From Botryllus schlosseri (Eukaryota), in NCBI GenBank assembly GCA_051294905.1, contig CM119378.1, positions 5,022,001 through 5,086,000 of the forward strand: a stretch of 64,000 nt of DNA, in the 5' to 3' direction. The position numbers were made by a program, and so were the translations under genes. Of this stretch, positions 44,301 through 56,800 are shown one piece after another (position 1 is the stretch's first letter; each line of letters starts with the position of its first letter). The notes beneath the pieces were generated by a model, which saw nothing but the letters and a program-made list of their open reading frames with translations, ran no database searches and was not told where the DNA came from.

Positions 44301-45257
44301 CTGACCTTACGACCGCTTTCCAAGCCGCTCCAGAAATGATGTACATGGATCCCCAGGTAGATACATGACAAGGGGCCTTTACCAGAGCTGCTACATACTT
44401 TAACGCACAAGTGTCCGAGCTTGCTTTATGTATGATATGTAAAGTATTGTTGAAAAATACTATCGTAAAGGATGCTACCAATTTTATAGGGAACCTATGT
44501 CGCGTATAATGGGTACCCTGGAAACGATCTGAATGCATACGAGATTGCAGCGATGAAATCACACCCCGTTCCTAAGTGTGGTCGATCGGACTTCCAGCTG
44601 TGGTATTTCTCCCCTATTATCACAGTGTAAGCCGATTACAATATCATTGTGTAATATGTTACATTATGAGATCAGCTCGTTAGGTTTATGGTCTGATTTA
44701 TGATTAATTTTTCGTCATTGTAGTGGCGGTAGAAGATTGGCGGTATTGGGAGAACGAGGGAAATGGGTTCCACTATCGACGCAACGCACCAAGAGCGTTG
44801 AAGTGACAGCAATCAACATAGTCGTACATGCTGAAGGCGTCCCAGGCGAGGTTCGTCAATCAAAATTAACCTTAGATGCTAACTATAGTTTGACTTACCA
44901 TTCATGTGTATGTCATATATCATGTCGCACGGATTTATTGCGGGTTAGGACGTAAGGGCTTATTGAGAAAGAGAGAGAGGGAGAGAGAGAGAGAGAAAGA
45001 AAGAGAGAGAGAGAGAGGGATGCTGAGCGCCTATTGGTTTGACACCATCCCGTGGCAGAACTACTAAATCACTCAATTCCAACATTGAAAGCTGAAGAAT
45101 CCTTGTTCTTGTCCTTTTTCAGAGCATACAGTTCGGATTCTATGACCCTTCGGACGAATACGATAACAAAGTAGCATTTGTGAACTGCAGCTTCGGAAAT
45201 TCGGGGAAGATACGATTGACCTACCCCTCTACATCGCAATCGTGCATACAGGAGTGA
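35325..45257 (+). CDS. Uncharacterised secreted glycoside-hydrolase-like protein (clan GH-D / GH27-GH36-like TIM barrel), 756 aa, 16 exons
   Basis: Exons 35325-35376, 35630-35785, 35941-36074, 37567-37697, 37872-38064, 38499-38646, 39493-39685, 39795-39930, 40038-40130, 40845-40988, 41418-41637, 42644-42769, 44211-44356, 44490-44626, 44724-44850, 45123-45257. All are GT-AG, total 2271 nt, open to TGA. Signal MKLQIFLLIIAVIGVSLG. Motifs YLGYWTDNG, YLQYDSWWY, HNRYW, YEQDW, ARVSHDY, STGPVGPSD, CRSDGLLLKPS. Gene model is strong; family assignment is from motif recall. Confidence 0.85.
36483..37307. mobile_element. Probable hAT MITE with GTTCACG/GAACC subterminal repeats (intron 3 of the GH gene)
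   Basis: Imperfect TIR (G/T)AGGG(A)TGGTGTGA; no clear TSD. Confidence 0.5.
39200..39465 (+). mobile_element. tRNA-derived SINE, copy 2 (intron 6 of the GH gene)
   Basis: A box TAGTGTAATGG and B box AGTTCGATCC; same body as 32865-33185. Confidence 0.8.
41040..41390. repeat. Dispersed repeat family (other copies at about 3340-3650 minus and 62765-63150 plus)
   Basis: Shared core ctgaaaatg(c/a)taca...gtgcg...agccaag and ttctaatct repeats. Confidence 0.65.
42905..43419. mobile_element. hAT MITE, TAGGGCTGGGCA family, copy 2 (intron 12 of the GH gene)
   Basis: TIR TAGGGCTGGGCA, TSD tttatcag/ttgatcag (7/8). Confidence 0.8.
44966..45017. repeat. (GA)n microsatellite
   Basis: Directly visible imperfect dinucleotide run. 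Confidence 0.95.
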
Positions 45258-47542
45258 TTGGCTGGAAATCAGAGTAATAAACTTGCAACAAACGATGAAC
45301 TGACTAAAGACGTTTTGCTACAACCTATAATCAAAAAGACAGTGGGATTACTGCAAAGCGGACACCAAAGAAGACGAATATATATGTTGAATTTAAATTG
45401 TTCGATTAGATCGAAACGACTATAAATTCTGTGACTAAGTATCTGCTGTGCTTCCGCGTTTGTGTCTGGTGATTGGGATAGGATTATAATGATATCCGCG
45501 CGTTGTCTTCTTTTATTGTGATGGGCACAAAACAATATATTTCTTACACAAAATGCAATGACATGAACGGGTCATCGTCGTCGTGGTACTGCAAACATAC
45601 AATACAATAAGGGTTTGTAGATTACCTTCCGGCTGCACTCGGCGGGTGTTACTCGAAAGTCGTGAGAAGGACCATATTACATACTCATGACATCGCTATT
45701 CTCTTTCTTCGAAATTCGGTGCGCAAACGATATCGCACGACTTTGATTCACAGCCGTAGCTAGAAACATATGGTTCATGCGAAACTGAACAGCTTGTTCA
45801 AGGAAAGAATGATGCATTACCACGAAGTGCCATCCCATATTAATTCTACGAAATTTATGTGGAAAGGAAGCAAGGTCTGGCGTATAATTAGTGAGTCAAA
45901 CCACATTTGCGAGGCTCGCATTCACAACAATGATTTTTAGACATTGCCATTCCTAGCACCACTGCAGAGCTTCAATGCTAGGGAGCGAATTTGTAGCATA
46001 TTTCATTCTATTTTGACAAAATATTCAACTGACAATTTCTCGCGCTTCGCGCGATTTACCTCTAGCTTACAATTATTGCTTCGAGTCCGAATATCTTGAG
46101 AAGTCTCACAACAGGCATACCCATAATATATGCGTTGGAAATGCCAACATCCTGGTTGATCTAATATTTTTCGGACATGAAGATAAGGGGTGCGTGAAAT
46201 TTTTCACCATCATCAAGATGGGGGATGTCTAAAAAATTTTGATAACCGCTGATCTAGGTCAAGGGAGATGTTCCATTTGAAAGAATTTTAAACATCGTTC
46301 GACAGATTCCTGTATCTTTTCATTCTATCGCAATCTTGTGGTGTTTCAACATGATAAGATTTCTAGACAATTGAACGAACAAAGATAAACAAATTATTAC
46401 ATTACCTTAAATTTACACTGTTACAATTAAATCTACAGTTTAAAATTCACGATTTACAGTTTAATTTTCCGAAACTCACAATATAATCATTTCCGACAAA
46501 TATCCCTCCTCTTCCCCCGCCGTTGCCGCCCTTACGGCGACAAAAAGACCCGACGAAAGAAAGCACTCACAAGGAATGGAAAGAACTAGTAGAAAGGGCC
46601 GCGGATTCAAAAAGATCAACATCGAAAAGAACTGTGACATCGGGCACTCTAGATGGATGTTAGAGTAAAGGATCGCTACTGATGCGTGTTGTTCAACATC
46701 CTCCTATCTGTTCATGACATCGCATTGTGTCTTATCGCATTACACATTGTGCGTGACTTGTTCAGATGAAAAATATAACCCAATATATAATTTATCTATA
46801 TATCCCATTGCCAGTTTAATGCACGTACTTGGCAATTCCATAAGATCCTACCAATATCTTGGTTCACAGAACAAAAAGTAACTTTTATTCTCTTTGTTAA
46901 AAAAGAGGTGCGAAGAGGTAGTCGGTTTGGATCATGCTATGCTCTGCTATCATAGTGCAAAATCACAATGCAAAATTCGAGGCGAGTTGTGGGAGGTTCC
47001 AGGACCATGAGCAAAATAAAATTTATATTTTCGTAATCAGTACAGCAGCAGCTCTCCATTGATACCCGTTTTATCGTATTTAGCGCTCGACAAGCCGGTC
47101 AAAAACTACCGTAAAGTTGCCTTTGACCAAATGGAAAGTTTGACGTAGACCAATTTCACTGAGCCGTGAGATTTGCTTGTGTCCACGCCATAGGACACTA
47201 TGATGCTATGCTACGCCATTTAATAATGATAATAATGATAATTGATCGATAAGTCACAACAATTTGACAAAATGGTGCAAGGTGTATTTCATAATAGCAT
47301 TGCCGCGCTGCATAGAATTAATCGAGTCTTTGCCGTATGTCTTGGTTGTTGGTGGCATATGGCACGATTCTCGATTCATGATCTGATTCGCTTATCACTG
47401 ATACGTATTCATTAGCATAATCACCTCTCTACGTACCAAGTATCCGGTAAGAAAGTATATAATCAAGTTAAGTTGCAGCATCGTACCTACCTTAACGTTA
47501 TAATAGATATCAAGAGTTGCTGAATAGTTCCTGGTAACAATC

Positions 47543-47993
47543 ATGAAATATTTGACTCTGATTTCACTGTTGATGATCACTCTAGTTCTCGCTGATTCTT
47601 CTCATGGCGGGTGGTGGCGCAGAAAAAGGGGATGCAGGGGTGGCCGATGTCCTGTTGGGAGACCGCGTGGCCAAAAAGTCAGAGTAAGAACGCAAAGAAT
47701 GATTCAAACTTTAACATTTTATTGAATAATTTTTTTTTTCTAGGATGTCGACTTCGGTAAGTGTATTTTCAAGTGTATTAGAAGTTATTAGATATTAGAA
47801 GATATTTGGTCCTTTTAAACTGTAGAGTGACACGGAGCATATTTTACAGACGAATTCGTATCTATGTTCGGCATGGACGCAGCTGGTAAGAGATTGATTT
47901 GAAATCAATTCTTCGTTAATTAGATGAAACACTTTCTTACAACATTCGGAATTAATTACAGAAGCAATGCTGCAAGAAATGAACACTGAATGA
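47543..47993 (+). CDS. Putative antimicrobial peptide precursor (signal + cationic peptide + anionic propeptide), 73 aa
   Basis: Exons 47543-47683, 47744-47756, 47850-47885, 47962-47993 with donors AGA|gtaaga, TCG|gtaagt, CTG|gtaaga. Product MKYLTLISLLMITLVLADSSHG-GWWRRKRGCRGGRCPVGRPRGQKVR-DVDFDEFVSMFGMDAAEAMLQEMNTE*. AATAAA at 48071-48076. Confidence 0.8.
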
Positions 47994-48156
47994 CTTCGTT
48001 GAAGATCGAAGATCACAAAAGACCGTTATCGAAAATATATTCAGATTCACCGTGACTGTTGAGTTACTCAAATAAAAACTCGAAATACTCAATTTTTGTA
48101 CTGAATTCAGCTGCATAGAACAAAGTAACCTAGGTATCAACGTGTAGCACAGAATA

Positions 48157-48157
<1 letters not shown>

Positions 48158-48197
<40 letters not shown>
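48158..48197. repeat. (CT)n microsatellite, about 165 bp downstream of the AMP-like gene stop
   Basis: Directly visible. Confidence 0.95.
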
Positions 48198-48198
<1 letters not shown>

Positions 48199-49178
48199 AT
48201 GTGGAATTAAGCACTGTCTGAACTAGTGCACGCATCTCGCCAAGTGAACCTATGATAAATTTTGCAAACTCTGCTGTGGGAAGGTAGCAATAAGGCTTTA
48301 TTGTAAATCGGTGATGTAAGTCGTGTTTGTGAGACACACACTTATGCCATTAATTAATGCAAAGTTATTTGACATGTTTAGCGCCATTGCCGTTTTGTTA
48401 GAACTATGATAACAGGAGTGAAATTCTATTCTGAGATGCAACTTCGAGTTCGAACTTGAGAATAGAGGATAGCCTCTACCCACACTATATCAGTGGTGTC
48501 AAACATATGGCAAGCAATTCTAAGTATTCGAAAATTGCTTGTATTATCCAGCACTATTCTATTAAATGTTTAGATTTTTCGTAGAAATACTTCAATTAAA
48601 TATTCCCTCAAGAAAGCAAATGCTGAGTTATGTTCATATGCCGCATTCAAGGATATATATCATTGGTCTCATTATAACCATCCGACAGGGGTGTTATGGG
48701 TTTACTCTAGTCCCCACAAGAAACCAAGTCAGTGATATTGACGTCTAATTCCGAAAAGTACACACTGAGTTCAGATGTTTATGAAAAAGTGGTTAAAAAA
48801 GTAGTTCTTCAGTCTTCATTTCCTCAGTCAATGCGAAACCGTTATATGCAGGTTACATGGAGAACTAAATATAGTCACAAAAATATAATTCAAATATCTG
48901 TTGTCGCACCACTGTCCTCGGCCACCATAGAAACCCGAATCGCGATTTAATACTGATGAACCAAATTCGTTTACTGCCTAAACTTATATGCACCCTTGCC
49001 ACTAAGGGATTGGATCAACTTGGATTATCGTTCAAGTCGATTATCGCGTTCATCAGGATTTAACAACCCAGGATTAAGGAAACCGGTTGATCGCCGACCA
49101 TAAATTTACGTTTTATCTCATGTTTTAACAGACCGGAACAAACTATAGATAACTAGTTATCTATAAACACTGCTTACT

Positions 49179-49179
<1 letters not shown>

Positions 49180-49219
<40 letters not shown>
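49180..49219. repeat. (GA)n microsatellite
   Basis: Directly visible. Confidence 0.95.
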
Positions 49220-49222
<3 letters not shown>

Positions 49223-49672
49223 ATCTATTCGGTTCCTTCCATGAACATTGAAAATACATAGTTCGATGAATACAAGGCAAAGTATACGTAATTCAATTCA
49301 GAACCAGGCTGTAGCGAAGGGATCGGGAGATCATCAAGTCAGCTACAGCCTGAAAGGATGGTTGTAATATGAAACTTGAACAGAATATGACACGTTCGCA
49401 AAGCAAATAATATAACATGTTCGCACTGTATCAAAACAGATGTAAGACTAAGTAGGAGCATTCACAGTAGGTGACCTAAAGAATGGTGAAGATAACACAT
49501 TGGCACCGGTTACAGGAACACAAACAAGGCTGAGAGATGCTGATTGACAAATTTAGTGAGTGAGTGACATTCCTAAGCGCAAATATTTCCAATAATGACC
49601 GAGACGATTGTCTCATCATCGAATTGTACGCTTGCATAGCGATATTGATATAACTATCAATATTCTCTAATC

Positions 49673-53868: not shown

Positions 53869-56800
53869 ATGGGAAGATATATCCTAGTCCTAATTCTTTC
53901 AATGACAGCGGTACAATTGCGTAAAGGTGGGAAACGCTTTCCTGTCGTGATGAAATATACTTTCATGGACATGAGCAATAGGGCTCTTCAAAAATGACTT
54001 TTTTTCTCAAATCGTACTGGCTACTTGATAAAATTGTTACGTTACCTAATTTAAGCCTACACACAAAATTTGGTTCAATTCCAACCAGTAACCGCTTTGC
54101 TACACGAGAAGTAAGTTTCTATTTATTATATAAAAATAAATAATAAAAAATTTGAAAATTTTCTGTTCACCACATGAAAGTGTTAGGCTGTCTATAGAAA
54201 CGATGCTCACCAAATTTGGTTCAATTCCAATCAGTGGAAGCGGAGCTATTGCCGTCGAAAAATTTGGATTTGAATAAAATAGTATTTACGGTGAGCTCAA
54301 CTGTAATAAATAAACAAAGAATCGGTCACCGTAAATACTATTTTATTCAAATCCAAATTTTTCGACGGCAATAACTCCGCTTCTACTGGTTGGAATTGAA
54401 CCAAATTTGGTGAGCATCGTTTCTATAGACAGCTAAAACAGCTAGAATGTCAGGTAGACGAAAACGAGATTAAAAATATCCTCAACCAAATGGACAATGA
54501 CAAGTCGCCAGGGTCTGACGGACTATCAAAGGAATTCTACCTGCAATACTGGAATATGATAAAACATGATTTATGTGAGGTAATAAACAATGCCTACCTT
54601 TTCGGTGGATTATGTAGCACCTGGAAAACGGGAATAACGACGATAATTTACAAAAAAGGCCAACCCACAGAATTAAAAAATTGGCGACCTATTACTTTAC
54701 TAAACACAGACTACAAAATACTCACCGGACTGATTGCTAATAGACTAAAACCAATACTACCAAATCTCATTCTTGAAACACAAAAATGTGCAATAAAAGA
54801 TCGTGAAATCACGGATATTTTACGAAACACGCAAGCTGCAACAGAATACGCGAAAGAGAAAAAGAAGGAACTCCTGATAGTCAACTTAGATCAGGAAAAA
54901 GCTTTTGACCTGCTAAATCATGAATACCTTTTCAAAATTCTTGAAAGTTATCATATGCCGGAAACATTAATGCGGCTGATTAAACACATCTATAACACCG
55001 CATCGAGTAGAATTCTGGTAAATGGCGCAATGACACACCCCATAAAACTGGGTAGAGGGATACGGCAGGGGTGTCCTCTGAGCATGGCGCTCTACGCCAT
55101 TAGTTGTGACCCCCTAGCCAGGAAAATAACGAATAACGAAAAAATCCAACCCTTCAGAATCGGAAAAGCCACCATAAAAATCCAACAATATGCCGATGAC
55201 ATAACTTGCTTCCTTACCAACGAAAAAGACATTGGCCGCATATTCCAGGAATTCAACAAATTCGAAAGAGCAACAGGACAGAAACTAAATGCGGAAAAAA
55301 CCGAAATCTTGCATATCAACCAGAATAAGTGTTCGAGCCGAAACCCGATTTACGATAATAAGAAAAAACGAAGCATAAAAATATTAGGTCAACACTATGG
55401 AAAAAATCAGATTGAAGAAACCTGGAGCGAGAAAATTGCGAAAATCAAACGAACACTATATGGCTACCGTGATAGAAAACTGACATGGGTAGGAAAGCTT
55501 ACGATCCTGAACTCCCTGGCATCAAGCCAGATCATATATAATGCGAGGGTAATAACAGCACCCAGAGAAATAAAAAAAGAGCTAGAGAAGCTATATTACA
55601 ACTTCTTATGGCACCCCCAAAAGATGGAAGCAATAGCCAGACGAACGCTTATTGCAGAAAAAAAGAGAGGGGGGGTCGCAATGCCGGACGTGGAATCAAA
55701 GTTCAAAGCGTGTGAACTTGAAAAAATTGTCGCGCTGAAAAAATTGGATCAACCGAAGGAGATATGGCATCAACATGCCATATACGAAATCGGCACAAAA
55801 TTGAAACAAATTAACCCCGTGCTCTATAATAACTCTGAGCCGCATAAATTCCCGACACCCGAAAACTGGGTGGAAAACCTGGAATTAACAAAAAAAATAA
55901 AACTCACAAACGATGAATGGGAAGTCGCATCTCACAAAACGCTATACAAAGAAGTCAAGAAACTGAAAGAAAACAATCCAAATATTAGAACAAAAAACGG
56001 AGACGAAATCAACTGGAATAAAATTTGGCAATCGAAACATATGGGACATAAAGTAATAACCAACGAGGAAATAATTATAAACTACAAAGTAGTCCACGAA
56101 GGATTCATATTTGGGGCAAAACGGAAAAGCAGAAACTTGACCCATGACAAAGATAATAAACCGCTCAACCTTAATTGCAAATTTTGCAATAACGAAAAAG
56201 ATGACATAAGACACATACTAACAGAATGTAAATATGCAAACGAAATTAAACTCCATGTTGAAAGAGCGCTCGGAATAACAATAAACGAAAATAACATACT
56301 CTACAACCATAAAACGGCGAAATTAATGTGGATAATACTATCCATATTAAAGAAGGTTGTGATAAAATTCAAAATAGCTCTAGATATTGATAATAGAAAA
56401 GCAGGAGAGGAAAAAATTGGAAGAAAGATCCTGGAAAAATTCATTACCAGAATGAAAAGAGTACCAGAAAATGAAAACATCAGCGAAATTATCGCAAAAA
56501 CTGACGGATACCTACAAATTCTGTAGAAATTTTTAAAAGTAAAACCATTGAGATTACAGTGGGGGGAGTAAAACATGAGTATAGCAGTAAAATAGAGAAG
56601 TTAAAAAGAATGAGAGAAACCGTTTTATCAAGTTGAACCATTTAATCACCTAAGTTGGAAAATATAAAAAACAAACTAAAAAAAAAAAAAAGAAAGTGTA
56701 ATCAAGACCCCGAGCGCGAGACAGCCCTACACATACGAGAGGGCTGCCGAACGCCGGCGGATACGGGGAGCCGTATAAAAAAAAAAAAAAAATGAGCATC

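Follow-up and report, generated by a model that had tools for sequence, protein, structure and literature searches.

Tunicates are the closest invertebrate relatives of vertebrates. To our knowledge, few gene-encoded antimicrobial peptides (AMPs) have been described from them, and almost all of these are linear helices, such as the styelins, clavanins, halocidin, Ci-MAM/PAP, and botryllin, with the Cys-rich turgencins as an exception. The mature peptides of the styelin/clavanin/botryllin type, found in Styela clava and Botryllus schlosseri, are Cys-free, Lys/His/Phe-rich amphipathic helices of 23–37 amino acids; they are abundant in the producing cells, and the anionic C-terminal extension of their precursors is removed. 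In styelins and botryllin, the precursor is laid out as a signal peptide, a cationic peptide, and an anionic extension (PMC9966394; PMC10608444).

The window, by which we mean the whole 64-kb stretch of DNA analysed here, contains a small gene whose predicted 73-aa product has the same layout. Its hydrophobic N-terminus consists of MK and 15 mostly aliphatic residues ending in VLA, followed by the polar stretch DSSHG. The 25-aa core contains 8 Arg, 2 Lys, 6 Gly, 2 Trp, 2 Pro, and 2 Cys (CRGGRC), with a computed charge of about +9.7 and a pI of 12, and the 26-aa tail is Cys-free and carries 4 Asp and 4 Glu, with a charge of about −8.2. These values reproduce the +10 and −8 claimed in an earlier note on this DNA, and the parallel with ascidian AMP precursors that the note drew is borne out in the order of hydrophobic N-terminus, cationic core, and anionic tail. 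As in botryllin, whose published epitope is GWYNKHK, the mature peptide may start with Gly-Trp, and the transcript is likewise abundant.

The kinship does not extend further than the layout, neither to a sequence relationship nor to the helical, amphipathic type. The core is Arg/Gly/Pro-rich, has two Cys, and shows no helical amphipathicity, unlike the styelin type; its helical hydrophobic moment is reached by 66% of shuffled sequences, and the same comparison gave no support for an amphipathic helix in either the core or the tail. Because the core is neither an amphipathic helix nor an obvious β-hairpin, its mode of action is not readable from the known ascidian AMPs. No sequence homology to styelin, clavanin, or botryllin was found in libraries whose styelin and clavanin content is unconfirmed, the query against the protein representatives and Pfam being the exon-1 product. 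Identity with botryllin itself was considered and rejected, as the botryllin precursor has 158 amino acids (PMC9966394) instead of 73, and the published epitopes differ. Judged from the predicted precursor, the resemblance to styelin and clavanin is thus one of layout only.

We rebuilt the gene model by script and obtained a 222-nt spliced open reading frame (ORF; 73 codons plus TGA), in which three introns of 60, 93, and 76 nt, all with GT..AG ends, join four exons of 141, 13, 36, and 32 nt at the same coordinates as proposed earlier. The donors read gtaaga, gtaagt, and gtaaga, and each acceptor consists of a polypyrimidine tract plus ag. The unspliced ORF (47543–47725, 60 aa) enters intron 1 and then meets a stop, in agreement with the earlier description of its end as nonsense. 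The start codon (47543) has A at −3 and is the mRNA's first AUG; the 5′ leader contains no ATG before it. The RNA data compared with 47300–48155 were transcript contigs of a 2015 study (X2) and of a run labelled as a second organism (X26), and two raw runs, X13 and X14. The features, all on the + strand, are as follows.

47456 to 47462, + strand: TATA box TATATAA, from the sequence, about 32 nt 5′ of the capped end given by template-switch-tagged reads.
47488 to 47542, + strand: 5′ UTR, with an approximate start near 47488, from tagged reads and a rise in depth at 47474–47502.
47543 to 47683, + strand: coding part of exon 1, 141 nt; X14 depth about 1,800–2,700 per mate direction, and contigs in X2 and X26.
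47684 to 47743, + strand: intron 1, 60 nt, gtaaga...ttctag; X14 depth about 0, with reads joining exon 1 to the micro-exon.
47744 to 47756, + strand: exon 2, the 13-nt micro-exon GATGTCGACTTCG, encoding DVDF plus 1 nt.
47757 to 47849, + strand: intron 2, 93 nt, gtaagt...ttacag; depth 0–2.
47850 to 47885, + strand: exon 3, 36 nt, the middle stretch of the acidic tail; about 2,000 reads deep in each direction.
47886 to 47961, + strand: intron 3, 76 nt, gtaaga...ttacag; a residual depth of about 9, and 2,441 reads that skip it.
47962 to 47993, + strand: coding part of exon 4, 29 nt plus TGA, end of the acidic tail; depth about 1,500–1,700.
47994 to 48100, + strand: 3′ UTR, with an approximate end; depth 560–700 up to 48082, about 90 in 48083–48111, then 0.
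48071 to 48076, + strand: poly(A) signal AATAAA, from the sequence; read depth stops about 15–35 nt downstream.

The locus is a small stand-alone gene with a TATA promoter, four exons including the 13-nt micro-exon, and an mRNA of about 370 nt. Exon 1 encodes the predicted signal peptide (aa 1–17 or 1–22) and the cationic Arg/Gly/Trp core (aa 23–47, with CRGGRC). A T-rich tract and ag stand directly before the micro-exon, and gtaagt directly after it. The poly(A) signal that had been noted at 48071 is present, and the read depth ends just beyond it.

The RNA data show that the + strand is transcribed, where the transcript is capped and where its poly(A) region lies, how its three introns are spliced out, and that the predicted frame is under coding constraint. 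In X14, 14,014 of 9.98 million reads (0.14% of the library) fell on the locus; in X13 there were only 12 of 6.9 million, about 800-fold fewer per read. The X14 depth in the introns is about 0–10 versus about 2,000 on the exons. The window-like junction from exon 1 to exon 3 (47684>47849) is carried by 247 X14 reads, and 245 of them hold ATGTCGACTTC in between, which is the 13-nt micro-exon with its flanking G's absorbed by the adjacent alignments. A divergent form of the same junction is carried by 1,665 X14 reads, 1,644 of which hold GACCCAGA and the same micro-exon. Intron 3 is skipped, with GT..AG ends and 76 nt left out, by 2,441 reads (47884>47961). The X26 contig is spliced as exon 1, micro-exon, and exon 3, and the loose end of X2 contig 2 likewise runs from exon 1 through the micro-exon to exon 3. 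The proposed junctions, including the 13-nt exon, are therefore borne by three separate studies, far above chance, and the RNA-seq check that the earlier note had called for came out in favour of its four-exon model, with both the micro-exon and intron-3 splicing present in reads and contigs.

The first mate of all 12 X13 reads maps to the − strand, as a dUTP-type stranded library would give for a + strand RNA. In 2,258 reads, GTACATGGG, which we take to be the 3′ end of a SMART template-switch oligo, runs into leader sequence that is homologous to the window from about position 47489 on. The tag and the leader together place the capped end near 47488, 32 nt after TATATAA, and spliced-leader trans-splicing of the mRNA was not seen in the tagged reads. 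A few joins between opposite strands at 47523–47560, in the 5′ UTR and the first part of exon 1, have 4 reads each and most likely arose during library preparation from this short and very abundant cDNA.

We found at least three expressed variants in X14, which align to 47503–48030 at 88–97% identity. Only 65 of the X14 reads are at least 99% alike to the window, most are 90–95% alike, and not one is an exact match to the window allele. About 80–85% of X14 is variant a, which is also X2 contig 2 and has 18 differences in 173 nt; relative to the window it carries I7V, S20T, H21N, K28R, R29S, K45R, V46P, and Q68E, its synonymous changes number about 11, and its 3′ UTR is in part different. Variant b accounts for about 14% of X14 and is also found as the X26 contig and as X2 contig 1; compared with the window, its one amino-acid change is V38I, alongside 8 synonymous substitutions. 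Variant c has a divergent exon 4, seen as 984 loose ends reading ...EAMLEEMNRE... A 7-nt deletion at 48001 occurs in 14% of the X14 reads.

Across all four exons, there is a clear excess of synonymous changes in the predicted frame. The dN/dS values (Nei–Gojobori), which are approximate because the haplotypes were phased via read frequency and the two X2 contigs and not per read, are 0.03 for the window versus variant b, 0.21 for the window versus variant a, and 0.29 for variant a versus variant b. Within the comparison of the window with variant a, the value is 0.34 for the core alone, 0.10 for the signal, and 0.09 for the tail. The stop codon and the frame are retained in variants a and b. 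GGWWRR, GCRGGRCP(V/I)GRPRGQ, both Cys, and Arg47 are unchanged among the variants, and the acidic tail differs by one residue (Q68E in variant a); such strong conservation suggests that the tail has a role beyond charge neutralisation. Furin cleavage at RRKR was considered as a conserved step and rejected, because the main expressed variant has RRRS; cleavage there is unlikely, which agrees with a GWW-containing product.

The ratio of variant a to variant b is about 6:1 in X14 and about 3:1 in X2. The variants may be paralogues or very divergent alleles; that the ratios are unequal, and that two studies contain both forms, speaks for paralogues or for a pool of animals. No second copy was found within the 64-kb window, where tblastn with the product and blastn with 47300–48200 matched only the gene itself and CT/GA microsatellites. 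The transcripts form a small family whose members are closely related and are very highly and unevenly expressed.

The earlier note had matched the mature peptide to none of the helical ascidian peptides and had suggested a possible new family; the searches likewise gave no similarity to a described peptide. No relatives were found among 5.8 billion protein clusters by a k-mer/phmmer search, and an exhaustive phmmer search of the exon-1 product against 1.84 billion representatives returned one match only (P0001, E = 5e-4), a repeat protein with QSCRGSNCP units that we judged to be a chance match and rejected as a homologue. Exon 1 matched no Pfam family at E up to 10, the Toddler model included, and the PDB sequences gave nothing significant, only noise at E near 1. 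The neighbours in the Atlas feature search were weak (0.54–0.78) and comprised frog skin AMP precursors, pleurocidin, hepcidin, conotoxins, Toddler, and GPR15L, with plant glycine-rich proteins also among the weak leads. They weakly indicate a signal plus a short cationic peptide and nothing further, as an echo of that class. Motif strings from the core and tail had no relevant match in about 8.4 million papers and preprints, save GWWRR in EeCentrocin 1, and recent marine-AMP reviews list no such tunicate peptide. The gene is most likely unannotated and so far without relatives, encoding a secreted cationic prepropeptide of the host-defence type.

The surroundings hold no recognisable genes at 42–53 kb, where the ORFs lack Pfam domains, and a nearby 197-aa ORF gave no record on exact look-up. 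Farther downstream, a 678-aa ORF at 54490–56526 on the + strand matches RVT_1 (E = 4e-36), a reverse-transcriptase domain, and weakly zf-RVT, and is a LINE-type element. Far upstream, on the − strand, the ORF at 1606–1986 terminates with part of a C-type lectin domain (Pfam Lectin_C, E = 6e-5). About 60 nt beyond the 3′ end of the gene, at 48160–48198, there is a (CT)n microsatellite of some 19 units, and matching GA/CT repeats occur at 44965–45028 (about 3 kb upstream) and 49181–49233 (about 1 kb downstream). An NF-κB-type site is absent from the 540 bp upstream of the gene. GATAAG occurs at 47248–47253 and 47391–47396, two copies within 300 bp upstream of the TATA box versus 0.15 expected from the window density; as an immune promoter motif, the pair would be too weak an indication.

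The most likely role of the product, which we put at about an even chance, is that of a stored antimicrobial effector of an ascidian. We infer it from the Trp-Trp pair and Arg cluster, the chemistry of membrane-active host-defence peptides of the Trp/Arg type; the very high library-specific expression, the co-expressed variants, and the faster-changing core also fit an immune effector. The hydrophobic N-terminus would direct the precursor into the secretory pathway, with cleavage after VLA (Ala17) or SHG (Gly22); V-L-A fits the −3/−1 rule. The 26-aa acidic tail (−8) would balance the +10 core during synthesis and storage, like that of other stored cationic peptides. A proprotein convertase might then cut after the invariant Arg47 (KVR or RPR before DVDF, with a basic residue at P6), releasing an Arg/Gly/Trp-rich peptide of about 25–30 amino acids whose basic residues may be trimmed. 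The two Cys (C-x4-C) could close a small loop or link two chains, and the Trp pair beside the Arg cluster would bind and disturb anionic microbial membranes. A wider proposal, which we advance tentatively and hold to be somewhat doubtful, is a new chordate host-defence family of non-helical Trp-Trp/Arg/Gly-rich peptides with a four-residue disulfide mini-loop, possibly brominated, stored with an unusually conserved acidic partner that may serve in sorting, controlled release, or signalling, and produced in very large amounts by one particular type of ascidian cell.

Cationic Cys-loop peptides can also act as receptor ligands, and the product might be the precursor of a signalling peptide (a hormone, neuropeptide, or cytokine-like ligand) from which cleavage at basic sites releases a small cyclic C-x4-C peptide for a receptor. 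Cuts near the conserved RR and GR/RPR, for example, would yield a CRGGRCPV-type loop that might be amidated. Vasopressin/oxytocin-type nonapeptides have the spacing C-x4-C-P-x-G, which the core matches and follows with Arg; the loop and its flanks are invariant across the variants, and the weak Atlas neighbours (0.54–0.66) include GPR15L and Toddler/ELABELA, the latter itself an Arg-rich C-x4-C peptide. We nevertheless regard a signalling role as unlikely, because ligands do not usually reach 0.14% of the reads in a library, a level typical of effectors or structural products, and because several variants are co-expressed. Moreover, neurophysin or another family hallmark is absent, Pfam including Toddler is empty at E up to 10, and RRKR is not conserved, being RRRS in variant a.

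The same very high and very uneven expression across libraries would also suit an abundant non-immune secreted product, serving in the packing of polyanionic granule contents, the chemistry of a tunic or adhesive matrix, or reproductive or larval secretion. The Gly/Arg-rich make-up is like that of low-complexity matrix or packaging peptides, in line with the plant glycine-rich proteins among the weak Atlas leads, and the strongly conserved acidic tail agrees with such a role as well. However, at 73 amino acids the product is very short, the Tyr/DOPA-type and repeat features of adhesive and tunic proteins are absent, and a Trp-Trp pair and Arg cluster with a balanced anionic pro-piece is the usual mark of stored membrane-active peptides, which makes a non-immune role distinctly unlikely in our view. 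Least probable by far is a spliced non-functional or non-coding transcript with an accidental ORF. The ORF is short and a homologue was found in none of the databases searched, but the excess of synonymous over non-synonymous changes spans all four exons, a classical signal sequence follows the first AUG, whose context is good, variants a and b keep the frame and stop, and the expression is extremely high.

With the stored antimicrobial effector as the preferred reading, the locus is for now a good candidate for an AMP-like gene and not yet a discovery. If the reading is true, a massively expressed family of Arg/Trp mini-loop peptides would be a different chemical type among tunicate AMPs and, being small at about 25 residues, would offer a concrete target for synthesis. 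Such genes evade annotation because of their micro-exon structure (13 nt here) and their lack of homologues.

Comparisons with peptides outside the tunicates indicate how the product may work. The N-terminal GWWRR of the EeCentrocin 1 heavy chain, from a sea urchin, is identical to the putative mature start here, and centrocins bear a 6-bromo-Trp at the N-terminus. Centrocins are two-chain heterodimers (30 + 12 aa) held by one disulfide and cut from a single precursor. The product here has no light chain and resembles them in nothing more; its two Cys are both in the cationic segment, 4 residues apart, with none in the tail. Among Trp/Arg peptides, five common residues are no more than chance could give. 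Trp/Arg-rich and small-loop AMPs include indolicidin/tritrpticin, lactoferricin, the bactenecin dodecapeptide, thanatin, the C-terminal loop of nicomicin, and arasin-type Pro/Arg domains. The core has a comparable Trp pair beside an Arg cluster, a charge near +10, a short loop predicted to be closed by a disulfide, and a PxGRPR-type stretch. Nevertheless, the loop has four residues (C-x4-C) instead of the six in nicomicin (PMC10608444), and the pro-region is C-terminal, whereas that of the small-loop AMP precursors is N-terminal (cathelin-type or BRICHOS-type). The likeness may point to a possible working mode, by analogy, and none of these peptides is a homologue.

Toddler/ELABELA and vasopressin/oxytocin have in common with the core an Arg-rich character and a C-x4-C ring followed by Pro, the spacing here being C-x4-C-P-x-G-R. 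The product has no Pfam match to Toddler/ELABELA (PF22050), which scored 0.58–0.66 in the Atlas, and its cationic peptide precedes a 26-aa tail instead of being C-terminal. In vasopressin/oxytocin precursors, the nonapeptide comes right after the signal peptide and is followed by a GKR site and a 14-Cys neurophysin; here, only the C-x4-C-P-x-G spacing is present, there is no neurophysin, and the remainder is the Cys-free acidic tail of 26 amino acids. Compared with both the Toddler and vasopressin rings, the core has no conserved ring residues, and the expression is far above that expected of a ligand. The traits of host-defence peptides as a class are found here: the product is small, predicted to be secreted, and cationic with aromatic anchors, and it has a neutralising pro-piece predicted to be removable; its expression is abundant and library-specific, at least three variants exist, and the core dN/dS is 0.34 versus 0.10 for the signal and 0.09 for the tail. 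On the features of the predicted precursor, the gene should be filed as a new orphan family inside the known class of cationic pro-peptide genes.
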